From Hyphochytrium catenoides (taxonomy: Eukaryota; Protista; Hyphochytriomycota), in NCBI GenBank assembly GCA_900088475.1, contig FLMG01000801.1:1-43669 (forward strand): DNA of 43,669 nt. The letters run 5' to 3'. Under the pieces are notes generated by a model that was given only the letters and a program-made list of their open reading frames with translations, ran no database searches and was not told the origin of the DNA. Positions 1 through 9,873 of the stretch are shown here, in pieces. The position numbers and the translations under genes are program-made. The stretch's first letter is position 1. Each line of letters begins with the position of its first letter.

Positions 1-3000
1 TTCCCCTGAACCGTCTGATGAGACCCTTACCGTGCCGACCACATCTTTGTAAGGCAATGTACGGCAGCATTTTCCCCGTAGTCGATGAAGGACCTCTGAT
101 GTTCTCTTTCTTTTCTACCAATGAACCTTTCGCTGCTGTTATCACTCTCTCGCCCTACAATGACCTCACTGACGGTCCTTGTTCTTTATTCTCCTGACAC
201 CTGACAAAAGGACTTTTAACAGTGAGGAGCCCTGGCGCTGTGGTGGATAAAGAAGACTGACTTCTCCTCTTGCGGGTAAGCAATGCCTGGCTCCTGCCTG
301 TCATAAAGCCCAGTCAAGCATCTTCGACGGTCGTGACTCACACTCCTCCCTCCCTCCTTCCTCATACCGATGTGAGAACGCATCAAGGCAGGAAGAGACG
401 AAGTGGCGGACGACCGGCGGGACTTCCTACTCCTCACCAGGAGCGTGGAGTGACTTGCCGTGTTCAAGAAGAGGGTTCTTAGGGAAGGAGGCGGCTGAGG
501 TGAGTCAGTGAGACAGACAGAGAGAGAAAATAGAGCGGGAGCTAATAAGTCGAGAGACAGAGTGTGAGGAGAGAGGCAGGAGTGGGCGGAATTGGATTGG
601 GAGAGATAATCAGTACACTCCCGCAATGTTAGCAAGGATGGCGAACGATAAGGATAGGTAGAGGTCAAGCCCTTCTAGCCGTTAACGGCTCCAATGAACC
701 AACTGTGGTAGGTTCTGATCCTATGATGGCCGTCGTAGTTGTATGACGGCTGTACAGGTGGCGTACAACGGTGTCCCTAGCTAACGGACGAACAGTAGAA
801 GTTCGAGACTCAGAAGCCACGCAGGCCTGGCAGCAGCAGCAATGATCGATTCGATGAATGAGGAGAGAAGAGAGTGATGAGCTAACAGCGCCGCAGCGAT
901 CATACTTCGTCTCTGTTTAGTGATGACAAAGAGAGAAGAAATATCCATAAACAACCCTGCTGACTGATGAGTGCTGCGAAGGATAAGGGTTGTCACTGCT
1001 CCCCATCATCATCATTATTATTTGAGGCGCTGAGCAGAGATGATGATTATAGAGTAAAAGATCAATAAATCTGCATCATCCTGCCGATTCACTGCTCCCT
1101 CATCGCGCCTAGGGAGGGCCTTGGTTGTGGTGGACACCACCACTGCTGGTGGTTGTCAAATACTACACCACCCTCCTTCACCCCCCCTGGCTGCTGGTTA
1201 TAAGAAGCCTTTTATAGTAGAACCATCTCCACTGCTTCCTTAATACTGTGCTAATTCGATCAAAGCTCACCGGTCGACATGGACAACTTTGTTTGTCAAG
1301 GAAGCCGCACCTTCTAAAGTGAGATTATCATCAGTCAACAGGCCTATCCGTCGTCCTTACTGTATGACTCTTCGAGCAGGGAAGAAACCATCATCCAACA
1401 GAAAGTACCCTACTATCTCGTATTTTATTATCCTCTTTCTTCGACTCAATCATCACAGCAGCCATAATCGCTTTCTTATTACTTATGGAAGACTCGCGTC
1501 TCCTCTGTGAACGAAGCAACGCTAGTAGGTCCGGCCACCAATCTCTGACCATGACGATAAAAAGAGGCCAGTAATTCAGAGTATATAGCACTACTTTGTT
1601 GTTGCCTGTGATTTCCAATTGGTCCAGAGATCGAGAAAAGCTGTGGTCCGAAAAGCGAGCCTCCTGCCTGATGCCATCACGCCTCATTGTTATCGTCTGA
1701 GAGTAAACTTTGGAAATAAAGAAGAAAGTAGACATGATACAAGAGTTGTTGAGGCTATCACAGTATATTCTACTTGATGTGGAGCGGAGGTAGGTGAAAG
1801 GATGAGACTGTATCGCGGAGCCTCACGGATGGATCAGTAGGCGGCCAAGCTTTCACCAGCGATATCAGCTCTATCACCACCCCGACAGTAAATCGAAATG
1901 ATGATGAAGGATGAGGTGGGTTGTTCCTTACCGAAGCCTGGCTAATCATCCCATCATCACCGCCTCTGCCGTCCTCCTCCTGCTCTCTTGGTCTTCGGCT
2001 TTGTTTGCGGTGTGAGCAGCGGGACTATTGTTAGGTGTTCTTTGTTTACTTGTTGTACTATTAATATAGACATAACCTCCACCAGCTAACAGAAAGCTCT
2101 ATCTTTTACCCATAATACTTCAAGCAGTAATGTTAGATGTTGGACGACGCTGCTACAATTGTTGGGGCTATGTGTGGTAGTTTAAAGAGCTCCTCCTTCG
2201 GGTGTAGTAGGGTAGGGGGAGATCAAATCCTTGCATGTTTATTCTCTCCCTGCTCAAGCCTATGTTTTTATTATTATGGCCCTCCTCCTGAAGATCATTA
2301 TCCATAATAAGCCGCATTGTGAAAAAAATGATATTTAACCAGCAGCGGCAAGAAGCAACACCACCGGTCACTGCCTTTTTCAGTCGCCGGGAAGTTGATT
2401 CTTGAGGCAGCACACATCAGGAGATAATAAAGAGCAACAGAATAGAGGTGTAATACTCATGAGAACAACCTGCTTCTGCAGGATGCTGGAGCAACAAGAA
2501 GGTCACCGCTGCTGAATAATGATTCTTTTTATTGTTTCATTGTCATTGGCTGCCCTGGCTTACTATTATCAACTTATTATGGTGGTTGTCGGCTACCCTT
2601 TTTTTTCCCGCTTATATGCATTACCTTCTTCTTGAATCAGTCCTCTTACTTACCCTCCACTACATCAAACAGTAGTGCAGCTTTGCTATTCAAATCTTTG
2701 TGTTCTTTGCTATGCTGCATCCTCAATGACTATTTGTTACTACAGATAAGAACAGCAGCGAACAGCCAACCATCATACAAGTGACATCATCCGGAGTGGG
2801 GCCACTCCTCCAGGGAAGGACTCGAACGTTTGCTTATGAAGTACTAAAGAAAGCTCCATTCTCCTTTGCTGTCAAACGAGGTCTATTGAGGCTTCTCGCT
2901 GCTTGTCGCTCTTTCTCACTTGTGGGTTCTCCCTCTGCATTTTTATCTCTATTGCTTGTTCAGCAGTCATACAAGCAAATGATCCATCTCCCTTCCTTCC

Positions 3001-5322
3001 TCTCGGGCGGCAGCCACATGAAATAGATTGCTGTTATTTCAACTTACTTTCTTGTAGCCCTTTTATGGAATCGAGCTGCCGACCACCATCATGGACTTAC
3101 TTCCTGCTGCTCATTTTTGTCATTATCGTTGGCCAGTCTAACGCCTTCCTCATGAAAGCCCCGTTTGTAATATTGACAAGAGGAGGAAGCAGCAGCAGCA
3201 CCCTCTGGTGGGGAGAGACGAATGACTTCACCTCGTCATCATAGTAACAATTCCTTGTAGTTGCTACAAGTATTGGGGGTACAGTACTGTAATGCAACCT
3301 GTCATCAATGGTGGGTCCTCTTCCCTGGGGAGCTCTATGATGTCCAACAGTCAGCGCTTAATTATGGTAGAAAATGTGTGGTCCTATTTGCAGTCAAAGG
3401 CTAGGCTGCTTTGATGGAAGATGTGGCCTGTCGCTTCTGTAGGTTTCAAAATGATCTTGTCTTCGAACCAGGAACTATCTACTGTACAGCATGGTCTGAT
3501 GGGTTCAGAAAGGAATCGTTCGAGGCTTACTGAGTACCACAGCCGAATGTCATAGAAATCGGTCATGCACATAAGCGCCCATCAAGGGAGATTTCCCTTC
3601 ACAGGCCTCGAGGAGTGGGTGGGCGATGGGAGAGGAAGCTTGTGAGGTGGAGTAGCCGTTGTTATGGATAAATAACACTCTTCGTCATCAAAGCGTCACC
3701 CCATTGGCTTGTCCAGTCAGCATCAAGGGATTCATCTTAGGGCAAGTGAACCTTTAGGCAATGTCGCATGTACATCTACAGAAAAGATAGACCAAAGCAA
3801 GAAGGTCGTCTTTGTAATAAGAACCTGGACAACTTTGAACAGATTGAATTTTTGAAGTCTAGAACTATTTGTGGTAGATTTTGGGAACAGTAGTACAACC
3901 TTTTCACTCGCACTTATTATTACGGACAAATAAAGGTACAACCAAGAATTACTGTACTGGCATTTTATGATGTGCCTCGTCTCCCCTATCCTTTGCTTCG
4001 ATCTTTATGGAAAAAAAGTTATTGTTCGGAGTCCTGTTAGACCATCAATAAGTACAGCGTTCAATAAGCGTTTAGTAAACAGGAATCGCGTAGAATTTTA
4101 CCCAATGTAGAAAGGACGCTTTGTACCCCCTGGAACACTTCGAATTCTCTTATCTATCTATGTAATAAATTTACAAAGAAGGAGGCAGCCTTGGATTGCC
4201 ATTTGCCTGTTGTCTCTTTTAGGGCCAACATACAAAGACCTGTCCACCCCCTCCTTGCCCCCCCAGATCCTTGATAAAACAGGCAAGGAACCAGGAACGA
4301 AACATATCAACAGGAAAAAGCAAGAAACAGCAATCTTTCGCTGTAGGAGCTCGACTCTTTTCTCGAAAGTTCATGATGTTCCCGTCTGAAAGCTTCGCGG
4401 CGTTTTGTTTTCAAGATAAAAAGGGCCTACAGTAGGGGTTACATATGAGGAGTAGTGGCCCGTCCCACCCCAGCTAAAAATACAGTAACCAGTTCCTTTG
4501 AGAAAGTTGGCCTTTCGCGAACAGCGATGTCGTAGGAGGAGCAGACATTAGGTGCACAGCCTCTGACTTAATGCGAAATTCTCAGGATCCACCACACAAT
4601 ACCAAAGGCCGGCTGCCCCCCACCCACTGTCGGCCTTTCTCTCCTCCCATAGCTTATTATCATCAATGTTCATTTCCCAAAGCTTGATCCCTCCTGCTTA
4701 TCAAAGGCTAGGCTCTTCTCCTCCTTCTGCCTCTGTTCCCCTTACCCCGTCGCGTCCTGTTATCGTCGCACCTCTTCTGTTCGCCCACGGCCACGTGCCC
4801 CATCCTTCCTTCATCTTCCTTTGATCTCCTCCCAAAGTCCCACGTTCCAGCCCACCTGACCGAGTTACGGTCAGGTCCACAGCCAGGGAGACAGACAGGC
4901 TGACAGGTCAACAACAACCAGCAGATCACACCTTTCTGAATCCATCGCTCCCACAGACACACAGAGGAAAACGGTGATGAGTGAGGAGGATGAACCCTTC
5001 AGAGGTGTGAACCAATTGCAGAGACCACAAGCAGTTCGTAGCAGGTAGGCAGCAGGGTCAGGAAGAGCATACACAAGGCGGGAAGCCCGCTGCTGCGCGT
5101 CGCCCTATTCTTTTCCCCCTCCCTGATCTTTGTGGCTGCCGGACAGCACGCTCAATCAGGCCTAGCTTATTGCCAACAACAGGGGCATCTCATCTGAGAC
5201 AGAGGTTTTTATTAGTAAGGGTGGAGCAGCATCGACCGCTGGAGTGAGAAGGTTTAGCTCTTTGCTGGACGCGACATAAGATCGCGAGAGGAAGAGGTGC
5301 AGGCAGGAGGAGCTCATTAATT

Positions 5323-8300
5323 ATGCTGATGAAGACGTCAAGCACCAATGACTTTGCTACAGAGCAAAGCTCCAGCTACTTGTCCATTGCTGCTAGGACC
5401 TCATCCATGCCTGCGACTACTTCTCCTGGCAATGCTTCGCCTGTACCCCCTCAGAGAGTCGCTTCCTGCCTGCATCGAGCCCTGAACGGGCAAACGCATC
5501 TAGCCGTACTGCTTCTGGACTCTGCAGGAAACATCGCCTACGCTAGTCCAAGCGCAAGTAAGCTCACTGGTTTTGAGGAAAAGGAGCTGCTGGGAAAAAA
5601 TTTTTGGGAGGAGCTTGTGGACTCCGCAAAGATCAGGATGCCGGTAAAGAAAGAGTATGGTCTTTTCTCAGGATCGTCTTCTCTCTTGGAAACCGAAGGA
5701 GAAGGAGATGGTCTAAAAATAGAAGCGAAAGGGGTTAAGAAGAAGGAGGACAGCACGGAGTCCTCTGCCTTTGCCATAACCTGGCTTCGAAGGAAAACGC
5801 TAAACGGATCGCTGTTGCCGGCGATGCTAAGCAGCTCCACGTATAGCCTTCCGCAGGACGATCTGGCAGTTCAGGAGAAAGCTGACGAAGCAGAGAAGTG
5901 TAATAGAGGCTCTCTCGTCGCATTACTTCCTCTAGATTCTGGCTTTGGCTCTCTCTCCCTTGCAGAAGAGGCATTCCAAGCCATTCAGAACTCTCACGGA
6001 GTGCTAGAGATTGACATTGGTGGCCGCATTCTGTGGGCAAACAAGAACATAGCGGGTTGGCTGGAGTATGAACCTGAGGATCTTGTTGGGTTGCTACACT
6101 GCTCCCTTGTCCCAGAAATAGAGAGAAACTCTTGCTATGCAGAGCTATGGAATAATCTTAGAATGGGTAAGTTCCAGACTGGCGAGTTCATGAGGTTGAC
6201 GAAGACAGGGAAAGAGGTGTGGGTGAAGGGCAGCTATAATCCCATCCGAGGCCCAAATGGAAACGTCGTGAAGGTTGTGAAGACGGCGCTGAATATTACA
6301 CATGAAAAGGAGGCAGCGCTCAACATGGAGCAACGGATCAAGGCCATAGACAAGTCAAGCTCTGTCATTGAGTTTGACCTTGACGGCAACATCCTCACAG
6401 CCAATGAGAACTATCTACACCTTATCAAATACTCGCTTCCGGAGATCATAGGCAAGCATCACTCTATTTTCGTCGAACCTGGCTACGCCCAGAGTGAGGA
6501 GTACCATCAGTTCTGGCAAGACCTGAAACATGGGGCATTCAAGAGCGGAGAGTTTGAAAGGTTGGCAAAAAATGGAGAGAGAGTTTGGATTCATGGCAGC
6601 TATAATCCTATAACGGACCTTCAGGGACGGCCATACAAGGTAGTGAAGTTTGCCTATGATGTGACTGAAAGAAAGCGAGCAGACGCGGCTGTTTCCAAAG
6701 CGCGGTTTGAAGCTGAGATTGCAAAGCAATCTGCCTCTATGAGGTCTCAATTCTTGGCCAATATGAGCCATGAGATTCGAACTCCAATGAATGGAGTTCT
6801 GGGGATGTGCAATCTGCTGGCTAGCACAGCGACAGAGGAGCAGAGGAAGTACATCGAAGTCATGCAAACTTGCGGTAAGGCAAAGGGGCGAATAAACCTG
6901 CTAGGCCCGCCAGTCTCTATATGTCATCATGTTGTCCCTTCTTGGATGTATCACTCTCTATTACCACGGTGTGGCGAATGTCCCTTTTGTCGGTTACTTC
7001 TGCCCCTCTATAAAAAACGCGTACCGTCAAACGCTGACCCTACTATCCCAATCGTTTGCTTCGCTTTTATCTCACTTTCGTCGTCTGCAGGGGATGAGCT
7101 ACTGAAGCTGATTGATGGGATTTTGGATTTATCGAAAGTCGACGCCGGGAAGATGGTACTAGAGCCTATTACCTTCAACCTTAAGGAGGCCATTGAAGAT
7201 ATCGTGATGCTCCTGCTGCCAAAGGCGATGGAGAAAGGAATATCCCTACGCTACGTAGACTCCGACTCTTCACTCCCATCCCAGGTGATCGCAGATGCTT
7301 CTCGGTTCAAGCAGATACTCACCAACTTAGTGGGCAACGCGGTAAAGTTCACAGAGAAGGGACGAGTAGCTATTTCGACTCGGACAACCAAGAGTGAAAC
7401 CAACGGAAGACTCAAGGTGGAGGTGTTTGTGATGGACACAGGGATTGGAATCCCACCTGTGGTGAAGGACAGAATATTCTCCACTTTCATTCAAGCTGAC
7501 CTCTCAACGACAAGGAAGTACGGAGGCAGCGGGTTGGGTTTGGCCATCTGCAAGTCTCTTTGCCAGCTGATGGGAGGTGATATCGCCGTCGATAGTGAAA
7601 TGGGCCAAGGCTCCACGTTCACATTCTCCATTTTAGTGGACGAGGTGGTGAGCAACGGAAAAGCAATTTTGAAGCCCAAGGTTGGAGGCTCCAAGCTTTT
7701 TGACCCGGACCTGGGCAGGCGGCATCCGCTAAGGGTACTAGTAGCCGAGGACGATGCGGTTAACCAACTAGTAGCAAAATCCTTTTTAGAGCGCTTTGGC
7801 TATCGTATGGACCTTGCGACTAATGGGTTGGAGGTTTTGAAGAAGGTCACGGAGCAGGAGTACGATATTATCTTTATGGACTGCCACATGCCTGAATTGG
7901 ATGGTTATGAAGCCACCAAGCGGCTGCGGAAGCTCTACGCCGGAGTTCCAGAACCTCCAAAGATTATAGCTATGACTGCGAGTGCTCTGCATGAGGATGT
8001 GAAGAGATGTTACGATAGCGGCATGGATGGCTTTGTAAGCAAGCCAGTGGATGTTAGAGAGCTCGCGGGTGTACTATCTACTTGCCCAAGGAGAAGGGAG
8101 TCCACGGCGGCTTACAAAAGCAACTCTGGGCGAGCACATGCTGAAGAACCTCAGGGTTCCAAGTCGCGGATAGAGAGCTCAGACCTCATGATCGAAGGAG
8201 GAAAGGGCAATTCTCCTATTCTAGACGAAGAAGCATTGCTCGCTCATGTGAATGGCCTGTACAAGGTTTTCGAAGAGGCTATTCAAGTTCTTATCGTCAA

Positions 8301-8583
8301 ACTTCCCTCTTACAGGGAGCGTATTCGGCTTGCGATTGACAAGCAGAATGCGCAGGAGTTGCGTATTTCCTCACATGCCCTGAAAGGAGCACTGTCCCAA
8401 TTTTTCGCGGAAGAAGCCCGAGAAGCAGCTGCAGAGATGGAAGAAGTAGCTGCAGGAGAGGCTTACTCTCCTTCTAGAGCTGAGTACTGCTTCCAGAGGC
8501 TTGAGCAAGCCATGGACCGTTTAAGGCCCGTCTTGGCAACGTGGCACACACGGTTAAGGGTTTTAGCAGAGGGCGAGGCGTGA
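5323..8583 (+). CDS. Hybrid (unorthodox) sensor histidine kinase: PAS + 2x PAS/PAC - HisKA - HATPase_c - receiver - HPt; exons 5323..6874 and 7091..8583 (~1014 aa spliced)
   Basis: H-box [19 protein letters not shown]; N-box [14 protein letters not shown]; G1 DTGIGI; G2 [11 protein letters not shown]. Receiver VLVAEDD...[14 protein letters not shown]...SKP; HPt SSHALKG. PAS motifs [18 protein letters not shown]...[10 protein letters not shown] 72-aa non-homologous insert inside HisKA is bounded by GTAAGG (6875) and TGCAG (7090). Confidence 0.93.
6875..7090 (+). other. 216-nt spliceosomal intron (3n, no in-frame stop) in the histidine kinase gene
   Basis: G|GTAAGG donor, GCTGAC branch-like site, pyrimidine tract and CTGCAG| acceptor. 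Removal restores ...[22 protein letters not shown], the normal DHp helix 2. Confidence 0.88.
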
Positions 8584-9145
8584 GGTTGAGCGAAGGGCGC
8601 TGAGACACGTGACTAAGACAGGAAAGGAGGGAGGCGTGTCGTGGAGGTAGAGGATACCCGTCCCGCCTTAGGCCCGGGCGCAACAGTGGAAAAGGGCCAG
8701 TTTTGCTAGAGCCACGACTTTTTGTTAGATTCTTACCAGTAAAGAAGAGCGATCTAGATCGCATTGTGCGGACTCTTTTGCAGGCAGACACAAGGACGGC
8801 TACCATTCGTCTTGGCCTGTTTACTCCAATAAATCCACATGATATGCATTATGTTCAGGTACCGTTAGCAACAAGGAGCTCGGCTTCACCTAGTAGGGAT
8901 GCCAAAAGTCGGGCCGGTACATTTCCCTATGTCATTCAAAGCGGAGTCGACCAAAAAGTCACTCCTTAGACTGGACAGCCATAAAGGAGGTGAGAGAGAT
9001 GAAGCCAACAGCGCTTCGAGAAGTAATATTGAATCCTGGGTACAAGTCAGAGGACTGGTGACCTCAACGGACCAATTCAGGCGGCATTGGGAAGGTATTG
9101 GCTGTGATGACCAATTGACAATGCCATCTTTGAGTCTTTGGAGTG

Positions 9146-9873
9146 TCAGTCAAATTGTTGCCTGAGCTGCATCTCAGTCTCGCTCTTCCAGGTTCTGAAG
9201 TCACTTCCGATGCCCGCTTGACCTTTAACCCGCTGATTTTTCACTCGCTCTTTCGCGGTTTGGCGCTCCTTCGTCTTCCTATCCTCACTTTTGCTATCTG
9301 TTGACTGGGCTGCCAAAGAGCGGCCGGACGGTGATGAAAGAGGTGCAGCTTTCTTGGCTTCCATACCACCATTGACGAGCGCCACCTTTCTGGCCTTGGA
9401 GCCTGCGGAGTCGCCTGCTGGAGTCCACGCAGTTAGTGATCAGTGCTAGAAAAAGTGTTTGGTCTGTCCCCGTCACTGCCCTAGTCGTTCTCGACAGATA
9501 CTCCTGTTCCACTTTGGTTCTTACTTCTTCGTAGCAGCTTACCTTCTGTCCCGTCAGAGAGCCGCTTCTTGGATGGCGTTACAGCCTGAGCCCCACTTTC
9601 AGTGGCATAAAACTCTACCAAAAGGGGCTTTTTAGGTAGAAAGTCTGGCTTTACGGTCTCATCCGCTAGCAACTCTGAGGCGGATGGAAGGAGAAGTCTC
9701 TTGCTCACAGCGAGCTGTTTTCCGTTAGGTCCACCATCGACGGCGCCTTCTTTACTTTCTCCGTGAGACCTTAAGCGCTCATCTTCGCTATGTTCACTCG
9801 TAGCTTCTTCCTCTTCTTCATCCTCGGAGTCTGAGGCACCATAGCTGGCAAGCAACTGCAGTGGATTGGCCAT
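9146..9873 (-). CDS. Small conserved uncharacterized protein, 2 exons (9873..9543; 9417 or 9414..9146), ~200 aa
   Basis: N-terminal LLASYGASDSEDEEEEE motif. Phase-1 donor G|GTAAG at 9542, branch CTAAC at 9436..9432, and tandem CAGCAG acceptor in frame with the ORF ending KERVKNQRVKGQAGIGSDFRTWKSETEMQLRQQFD. I recall this C-terminus from uncharacterized plant/algal proteins (not verified). Confidence 0.75.

Follow-up and report, generated by a model that had tools for sequence, protein, structure and literature searches.

The distribution of two-component signalling among eukaryotes is patchy, and where it came from is argued over separately for each lineage. As a rule, the HPt of eukaryotes is a protein of its own, as in the Sln1-Ypd1-Ssk1 and AHK-AHP-ARR pathways, where the kinase chain ends at the receiver. 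By contrast, the bacterial kinases BarA/GacS, TorS, ArcB and EvgS/BvgS are tripartite, with kinase, receiver and HPt in one chain (HK-REC-HPt) and a His-Asp-His relay; they are membrane-anchored and sense their signals in a periplasmic or transmembrane manner. This layout has also been described in eukaryotes. Kabbara et al. 2018 (PMC6324907) reported HK-REC-HPt in the multi-PAS kinases of Albugo laibachii (AlaibHK1/2) and in PpolyHK5 and PpolyHK18 of Physarum polycephalum, in which the HPt is fused behind the receiver, and found several Ectocarpus kinases to be virus-derived. Judelson and Ah-Fong 2010 (PMC3019232) described soluble PAS-array kinases of oomycetes and discussed their bacterial look and possible independent acquisition. 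In Phytophthora sojae, the multi-PAS, TorS-like kinase Ps130388, which carries an HPt, has been functionally studied and acts in zoospore chemotaxis and cyst germination (PMC10072465). The original prediction for the DNA considered here, made from its sequence alone, took HK-REC-HPt to be foreign to eukaryotes; that view is outdated, since Albugo, Phytophthora and Physarum all have the layout (PMC6324907, PMC10072465).

We analysed a stretch of 43,669 nucleotides of the Hyphochytrium catenoides genome (the window) and found that one of its genes is an intact, selectively constrained host nuclear gene. The best explanation of the locus, which we hold to be probable, is that this constrained gene specifies a soluble 'unorthodox' hybrid kinase that carries a bacterial cassette and belongs to an oomycete-like kind. 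Its features are listed below; residue numbers are those of the unspliced 1086-codon open reading frame (ORF).

5323..8583, + strand: whole gene, ATG to TGA, a single 1086-codon ORF without a stop
5323..6874, + strand: exon 1, with a Ser/Thr-rich N-terminus, three PAS (one weak, two strong) and the initial half of DHp/HisKA
5500..5616, + strand: PAS1 (Pfam, weak and partial; residues 60-98)
5995..6300, + strand: PAS2 (Pfam; residues 225-326)
6364..6678, + strand: PAS3 (Pfam; residues 348-452)
6739..6874, + strand: exon-1 part of HisKA/DHp, with the H-box SHEIRTP and the His483 codon at 6769-6771
6875..7090, + strand: predicted intron, GTAAGG...TTTCGTCGTCTGCAG, 216 nt, phase 1, in frame and stop-free
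7091..8583, + strand: exon 2, with the remaining DHp, catalytic ATP-binding domain, receiver, linker and HPt
7294..7632, + strand: HATPase_c (residues 658-770; Pfam E 3e-26)
7735..8067, + strand: receiver (residues 805-915; Pfam Response_reg E 3e-25)
8278..8526, + strand: HPt (residues 986-1068), a four-helix bundle

Either the exons or the unbroken ORF served as input to searches, family scans and folds, whereas frame, length, motif positions and hydropathy were taken from the exons joined in silico, which give a spliced model of 1014 aa. The PAS stretches together reached family E-values of ~1e-24 to 1e-28 in Pfam. HisKA matched residues 473-519 (Pfam E 1.1e-16), and the H-box region is 58% identical to the bacterial protein P0009. 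All boxes of HATPase_c are present, namely N (NAVKF), G1 (DTGIGI), F and G2 (GGSGLGL), and are invariant in an alignment of bacterial relatives (A1), in which the receiver pocket is also conserved (the acidic pair EDD, Thr in AMTAS and Lys in SKP). The receiver motif FMDCHMP holds the phospho-accepting Asp853 (codon 7879-7881). In the same ORF, 70 residues beyond the receiver, lies the HPt, with the motif SSHALKG (HxxKG type) and His1018 (codon 8374-8376); its score with the Pfam Hpt model, 33.4 bits (E 5.4e-8), exceeds the cut-off of 24.6. Motifs and domain matches mark a tripartite HK-REC-HPt protein at DHp, HATPase_c, receiver and HPt, and its chain does not end at the receiver as in kinases of the Sln1/AHK type. 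The intact H-box His, receiver Asp and HPt His (codon at 8374) that had been noticed at the outset are therefore all in place, the layout itself is borne out by a Pfam match for each domain with the HPt above its curated cut-off, and the proposed lack of a membrane segment agrees with a best 19-residue Kyte-Doolittle mean of 1.37, as expected of a soluble, probably cytosolic protein.

In this respect the kinase resembles the oomycete proteins AlaibHK1/2 and Ps130388, which are likewise eukaryotic and soluble, with an N-terminal PAS array followed by HisKA-HATPase-REC and an HPt in the same chain; the oomycete kinases are stramenopile genes. Both look bacterial, with PAS domains that match diverse bacteria at 35-48% identity (PMC6324907, PMC3019232, PMC10072465, PMC10468136). 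They differ in size (1014 aa in the window kinase versus ~2160 aa in oomycetes) and in the number of PAS domains, which is two to three (one of them weak) in the window kinase and up to 14 or more in Phytophthora. By architecture and literature, the window kinase would thus share the oomycete multi-PAS/HPt kind, a ground on which the role of Ps130388 is not transferable to it. The Physarum kinases have their HPt behind the receiver as it does, although they come from another supergroup (Amoebozoa) and are likened to it by layout alone. The membrane-anchored bacterial kinases share its tripartite relay and differ from its soluble form with cytosolic PAS domains, whereas the Sln1 and AHK pathways share the His-Asp-His-Asp chemistry with the HPt on a separate protein instead of within the kinase. 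None of the equivalog thresholds in NCBIfam was reached, the best scores being those for BarA (302 bits, cut-off 890), TorS (277, cut-off 676.5) and ArcB (238, cut-off 838).

The closest solved relatives of the kinase core are ShkA and GacS (44% identity), and its fold matches HK853, GacS and RetS. Modelled on its own, the HPt had a pLDDT of 93.9 and its best fold match was the bacterial HptB (7c1i, TM 0.73/0.78), with further matches to the HPt domains of a Shewanella kinase (3myf) and ArcB (2a0b). Among solved structures, PAS3 comes nearest to PAS-A of MmoS, which binds FAD (3ewk, E 2e-16), and because PAS3 is closest to this FAD-type PAS the signal may be redox- or flavin-linked; a flavin-type cofactor, suggested by similarity to 3ewk, Aer and DosP, is our guess. 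On the basis of the residues conserved here and of the chemistry established for the class, we propose that the tandem PAS domains would sense a cytosolic signal and thereby control autophosphorylation of DHp His483. The phosphate would then travel within the same chain from His483 to receiver Asp853 and on to His1018 of the C-terminal HPt, a predicted transfer from which one or more separate response regulators, presumably encoded elsewhere in the genome, would be served. Such a partner was not found in the window by tblastn with the receiver of the bacterial partner protein, in line with the expectation that the downstream response regulator lies outside it.

The single intron cuts through the DHp. 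When it is removed, the exon join, which comes directly after ...VMQTCG, is colinear and without gap against residues 521/522/523 of bacterial P0009, and the second DHp helix is restored. It has GT-AG ends with a pyrimidine tract before CAG, and its 216 nt are close to the mean intron length of 208 nt in Hyphochytrium (PMC5795050). The splice at 6875-7090, the expression of the gene and its 5' end are predicted, as inferred from these features. A second in-frame intron at 5734-5856 was considered and set aside, its support being limited to GT-AG ends and a local cluster of nonsynonymous variants. An ORF that runs unbroken for 1086 codons fits the claim of one intron in 3.2 kb; the next-longest ORF of the 43.7 kb window has 542 codons. 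To one side, positions 1-5300 hold few long ORFs and no Pfam match, and the neighbouring genes are eukaryotic split-exon genes (Dus, YjgF, STI1 and ORC2).

A long unbroken ORF whose best matches are all bacterial might come from contamination or a chimeric assembly, that is, be foreign to the eukaryotic chromosome. Against this, a helix of the DHp that runs unbroken in every bacterial homologue is split here by the GT-AG intron with its pyrimidine tract, and the gene lacks a downstream operon partner. Read depth is even across the gene and both flanks in three DNA runs (~26-32 in X1, 320-370 in X2), DNA contigs span both its start (4922-5713) and its end (7179-8686), and alleles at half depth are present in the locus in all three runs. 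Codon use speaks the same way: the RSCU of the gene correlates with that of its neighbours at 0.40, similar to the within-neighbour baseline of 0.42, and with that of a bacterial homologue at -0.32. We therefore regard contamination as close to untenable. In the stretch from PAS2 to the receiver, every one of the 7 allelic variants is synonymous (7:0), a sign that the gene is functional, and all 4 of the nonsynonymous variants fall in the poorly conserved linker after PAS1 (~residues 100-224). A domesticated gene, as had been supposed, is what the spliceosomal intron, host-like codon use, alleles and domain constraint together describe, and its residence in a eukaryote would have been long enough for both the intron and the codon use to become established.

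The nearest relatives found are all bacterial, at 35-52% identity, with a best value of 45% over the full module and of 52% over HK-REC only (P0087). Across kinase, receiver and HPt, nine bacterial proteins share 38-43% identity in an alignment where His, Asp and Lys vary little or not at all, and in P0309, P0009, P0361 and P0370 a continuous HMMER alignment covers everything between the kinase and the HPt, both included. As queries in word searches, the whole ORF and residues 590-1086 returned matches that were only bacterial or unnamed (35-48% identity) among proteins of 597-1900 aa, a range outside which the oomycete kinases of ~2160 aa lie. An HPt-only word search, a weak test with its 171-residue query, gave no match at E <= 0.001 among 5.8 billion sequences. 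With exon 2 as query in whole-library HMMER, no eukaryotic relative was seen in the best 150 of 1.47 million matches, which scored at least ~342 bits, a level inflated by multi-receiver proteins and below which a eukaryotic relative of ~40% identity would score. Of 20 matches that were looked up, almost none carries a name. The ESM Atlas gave bacterial clusters only. A scan of bacterial and archaeal species found relatives at 33-45% identity in many phyla among the matches listed, and in a metagenome scan relatives were found at up to 47% identity, eukaryotic ones not among them. Taken together, the matches listed spread over Acidobacteriota, Pseudomonadota, Bacteroidota, Myxococcota, Bdellovibrionota and archaeal bins (33-47% identity), and no donor phylum emerges among them from the species and metagenome scans.

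In a careful maximum-likelihood tree, in which the root was not inferred and the window protein is the sole eukaryotic sequence, the kinase falls in a 14-member clade (UFBoot 100/SH-aLRT 98) that itself lies inside a further prokaryotic grouping (99/96). None of the species representatives, whose 36 best-scoring loci were in the tree, fell within this clade. Bacterial operons house every one of the five clade members that were inspected; next to each is a small gene, overlapping or divergent, and two of these members belong to chemotaxis (Che) clusters. The kinases of this clade, which holds P0309, P0009, P0370, P0157 and P0118 from uncultured bacteria, have the same cassette order, 38-45% identity over kinase, receiver and HPt, PAS domains upstream and invariant phospho-sites. 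The bacterial genes are operonic and followed, with a 4 nt overlap, by a gene for a receiver protein of 183-215 aa, whereas the window gene is solitary and intron-bearing, with no comparable partner in its vicinity. The sequence comparison thus supports bacterial ancestry of the HK-REC-HPt cassette, and the nesting by phylogeny that had been anticipated holds, with the entire cassette aligning in one stretch. As part of the overall explanation favoured above, and jointly with it, the cassette probably descended as one unit from bacterial operon-encoded PAS kinases. The data point to neither a particular donor lineage nor a recent date.

The origin of the HPt bears on this reading. A stand-alone HPt gene might have been joined to an ordinary hybrid kinase within a eukaryote, as the usual separation of eukaryotic HPt proteins would suggest, and the receiver-HPt linker is indeed long and disordered, exceeding that of the bacterial relatives by 14 residues. 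The bacterial proteins that match the kinase and receiver are nonetheless also the ones whose HPt is colinear with this HPt and resembles it most (20-35% identity, with the shared motif L-E/R-x-S/A-x-H-x-LKGA-x-S-x-F-x-A-E), and single HMMER stretches cover kinase to HPt in four of them. Its top fold match is a bacterial HptB, not a plant or fungal HPt, AHP1 and the Chaetomium HPt reaching TM 0.5-0.66. Because the HPt aligns within the bacterial cassette, a eukaryotic fusion is hardly plausible. Arrival with an integrated giant virus has its precedent in the Ectocarpus viral kinases (PMC6324907) and would suit a gene with few introns. No relative, however, was found in 2.9 million viral contigs, the neighbours are ordinary cellular genes, the tetranucleotide signature falls inside the range of the remaining window and the closest relatives are in bacterial operons; such a route is very unlikely.

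A lineage-specific event, in which a complete bacterial HK-REC-HPt gene was acquired independently of the oomycete kinases and then gained an intron and adjusted its codons, is possible but unlikely. In its favour, the nearest relatives are all bacterial and the kinase is nested among them with 100/98 and 99/96 support; it has one intron in 3.2 kb in an intron-rich window whose next-longest ORF is 542 codons; and eukaryotic relatives were not seen in the word (597-1900 aa), whole-library (best 150) and metagenome searches. Moreover, many independent transfers of PAS into eukaryotes have been argued for by Xing et al. 2023 (PMC10468136). The lack of eukaryotic matches is, however, a weak argument, because the searches were blind to long oomycete proteins. 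No donor emerges, the relatives at 33-47% identity are spread across many phyla among the matches listed, and the composition bears no trace of recent arrival. Oomycetes have this architecture too (PMC6324907, PMC10072465). An older origin common to both is no less likely. If the window gene and the oomycete genes are orthologous, any transfer would be old and shared. Read as a recent or lineage-specific transfer, the original prediction finds nothing that points there, the best identity being 45% over the full module (52% over HK-REC only) and the relatives lying across phyla. Had the gene entered this lineage alone, recently and independently, it would illustrate cleanly how a transferred gene gains an intron. 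At the speculative end, the kinase gene and the oomycete multi-PAS/HPt kinases may all stem from one old transfer from a bacterial Che cluster into an ancestor of the 'pseudofungi', and perhaps still serve chemotaxis of swimming spores as Ps130388 does, with the sensor and intramolecular relay kept and the bacterial receiver partner replaced; we consider this scenario, drawn by analogy, decidedly improbable.

To conclude, the soluble hybrid kinase that we favour would overturn nothing, as its architecture and bacterial look have previously been reported for oomycetes and Physarum; the layout being already known there, it is a further member of the kind and not a new architecture. It is a clear case in which a full kinase-receiver-HPt cassette, beyond single domains, is traced to a supported bacterial clade. 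As a short, tractable relative of the oomycete kinases, among them a regulator of zoospore chemotaxis in a crop pathogen, it could also ease the biochemistry of this family.

The kinase gene is a stop-free open reading frame (ORF) of 1086 codons at positions 5323-8583 of the forward strand, exactly the extent given in the original prediction, and Pfam resolves the following domains along it.

Domains of the kinase ORF (forward strand; ORF residues)
60-98, PAS, weak match
225-326, PAS, strong match (PAS2)
348-452, PAS, strong match (PAS3)
473-519, HisKA
658-770, HATPase_c
805-915, Response_reg
986-1068, Hpt (33.4 bits against a curated cut-off of 24.6)

All three phospho-sites are intact, namely His483 in the H-box, Asp853 (FMDCHMP) and His1018 (SSHALKG), the codon of the last having been correctly placed at 8374. 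A local script joining the exons gave a spliced model of 1014 aa, in which the N, G1, F and G2 boxes were all found. A hydropathy check of this model revealed no hydrophobic stretch long enough to cross a membrane, as had been proposed. Searches were run with separate exons or the unspliced ORF, and the joined model served only for the local frame, motif and hydropathy check.

The HisKA match stops at profile position 48 of 66, exactly at GTAAGG in the DNA, and a pyrimidine tract and CAG follow about 200 nt later. The predicted intron (6875-7090; 216 nt, phase 1) would be the only one in the gene, and its excision links ...EVMQTCG with [15 protein letters not shown]. Compared with the bacterial homologue P0009, exon 1 ends at residue 521, the split-codon Gly is residue 522 and exon 2 starts at residue 523; the predicted splice therefore restores colinearity with no gap. 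The intron measures exactly 72 codons, in frame and without stop codons (a chance of about 3%), and it is because of this coincidence that the whole gene reads as a single ORF. A prokaryotic gene caller would accept the intron-bearing gene whole, and intron retention would put 72 extra residues into the second DHp helix. We infer that the gene is expressed and spliced.

The Pfam score, the homologue alignment and the fold matches agree in indicating that the proposed C-terminal HPt is real. In an alignment with the HPt domains of nine bacterial relatives, the phospho-His is nearly invariant and the LKG motif is conserved. The structure model of exon 2 comprises a kinase core, whose nearest solved relatives are ShkA and GacS, a receiver, a disordered linker and a helical bundle. 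When the HPt was modelled alone (pLDDT 93.9), its top structural matches were HPt proteins almost throughout, with P. aeruginosa HptB among the best (TM 0.73/0.78), alongside the HPt of a Shewanella hybrid kinase, plant and fungal HPt proteins and the ArcB HPt.

The kinase gene belongs to the host genome and appears to be functional. Elsewhere in the window lie eukaryotic genes with split exons (Dus, YjgF, STI1/HOP), and codon use in the kinase correlates with that of its pooled neighbours (0.40) much as the neighbours do among themselves (0.42), versus -0.32 with a bacterial homologue. The tetranucleotide signature also falls within the window's own range. Contigs from three DNA sequencing runs span the gene and both flanks at even depth and run across its start and stop, and half-depth variants in these runs represent alleles. 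The 11 coding variants listed comprise seven located in PAS2, the kinase core or the receiver, all of them synonymous, and four nonsynonymous ones inside 66 bp (5714-5779) encoding a poorly conserved linker (ORF residues 131-153). The sample is small (n=11), but such a pattern is what purifying selection on the domains produces.

Contigs of two of the runs break at these same 66 bp. A candidate in-frame intron (5734-5856, GTTAAG...CAG, 123 nt) overlaps up to three of the four linker variants (5752 and 5779; 5731-5734 lies at its first bases, just outside). In runs X1 and X3, position 9825 also appears joined to 4713 through an intervening CTC (sites 4713-4733 and 9804-9825). A single contig accounts for this: it matches the window twice, over about 21 nt of CT-rich sequence each time, and differs from it for about 250 letters on either side. 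The contig most likely represents a different locus rather than a rearrangement at the kinase gene. Upstream, positions 1-5300 have a reduced G+C content (0.43-0.51) and contain few long ORFs, and no Pfam match was found for the three ORFs of at least 100 aa.

Word searches that took the complete ORF or its residues 590-1086 as query, in a collection without the window's own protein and covering proteins of 597-1900 aa (oomycete kinases, at about 2160 aa, fall outside this range), returned thousands of matches, none of them close (35-48% identity). With exon 2 as query, a HMMER search of the whole library produced 1.47 million matches; among those listed, above about 342 bits, the best contiguous kinase-receiver-HPt matches were the homologues P0309 (45%), P0009 (43%), P0301, P0361, P0370, P0105 and P0157, and P0087 reached 52-53% over kinase and receiver only. 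Relatives with a name or a checked context were all bacterial. When one genome was scanned for each prokaryotic species, the matches listed (33-45% identity) came from Acidobacteriota, Pseudomonadota, Bacteroidota, Myxococcota, Bdellovibrionota and others, and no single phylum was prominent among them; JGI metagenomes held relatives at up to 47% identity, and the scan of viral contigs found none. Related hybrid kinases in two Methanothrix bins (L008, L032) and a Saccharimonadales bin (L019) cluster with bacterial sequences in the tree; either transfer between prokaryotes or misbinning may explain them.

Five contigs of relatives were inspected for gene context. In four (P0009, P0157, P0370 and P0118) a small receiver gene comes next after the kinase gene and overlaps it by 4 nt, and P0087 has a small HPt gene beside it in divergent orientation. 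Chemotaxis-type clusters with CheA and CheW are present on the P0157 and P0118 contigs, that of P0157 additionally having CheR, CheB/CheD and an MCP.

Gene context of bacterial relatives
L001 3172-3813; L165 11396-12040; L166 2817-3368; contig of P0370: partner receiver protein, 183-215 aa, 4-nt overlap with the kinase gene
L165 3919-7535 and 14256-19072; L166 3509-6220: chemotaxis-type cluster

The small receiver protein looks like a conserved partner of the bacterial kinases. In L001 and L165 it has a DHp-like HEINNPL box without an ATPase domain. A search of the window with this partner found no trace of it, in keeping with the original statement that a downstream response regulator is absent there.

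As to how the kinase would work, its soluble PAS domains may bind or sense a cytosolic cue, upon which the dimeric DHp/CA core would autophosphorylate His483 and the phosphate would pass to Asp853 and then His1018; the HPt would then serve one or more separate receivers encoded elsewhere in the genome. These relay steps rest on the known chemistry of tripartite kinases. PAS3 most resembles the FAD-binding PAS-A of MmoS (3ewk, E 2e-16), followed by DosP and Aer, and also matches the NifL model; a redox or oxygen-linked input is thus at most a reasonable guess.

A careful maximum-likelihood tree of 50 modules, with the window protein as sole eukaryotic member and the root not inferred, places it in a 14-member clade (UFBoot 100 / SH-aLRT 98) nested in a further prokaryotic grouping (99/96), on an end branch of 1.34 against a median of 0.97; a quick tree of 71 rows agrees. 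The bacterial nesting expected under horizontal transfer was thus recovered. Together, the alignment, the tree and the contig context of relatives argue that the kinase-receiver-HPt cassette is bacterial by descent as a unit. That a eukaryotic HPt was joined to an existing hybrid kinase is unlikely, since the HPt appears to share this bacterial descent.

Whether the transfer was special and recent is another matter. An older census of narrow sampling found no HK-RR-HPt protein in eukaryotes (PMC4558063). Yet both multi-PAS kinases that the oomycete Albugo laibachii possesses carry a fused HPt after the receiver (Kabbara et al. 2018, PMC6324907), as do Physarum PpolyHK5/18 (PMC6324907), and P. 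sojae Ps130388 combines multiple PAS domains, a TorS-like core and an HPt in a 6486-bp ORF (PMC10072465). The oomycete kinases are soluble, with PAS arrays of bacterial size, and their independent acquisition was left unsettled (Judelson and Ah-Fong 2010, PMC3019232). One P. sojae PAS domain has matches in diverse bacteria only, at 35-48% identity (Xing et al. 2023, PMC10468136), and the matches of the window kinase are similarly spread at similar identity. Ps130388, which shares the architecture of the window kinase, is required for zoospore chemotaxis and cyst germination (PMC10072465), beside which the chemotaxis context of two of the five inspected bacterial relatives is curious.

The original reading of horizontal transfer therefore holds for the bacterial nesting and for domestication (intron, host codon use, alleles), but not for HK-REC-HPt being foreign to eukaryotes (PMC6324907, PMC10072465). 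Moderate identity with no nameable donor, full assimilation and an architecture already present in eukaryotes all argue against a special, recent transfer. The observation is confirmed and its interpretation supported in part. The protist has a soluble unorthodox hybrid kinase of PAS type and bacterial descent, a new member of a kind already known. Should the organism be near kin of the oomycetes, an old origin common to both would be no less likely than a transfer into this lineage alone.
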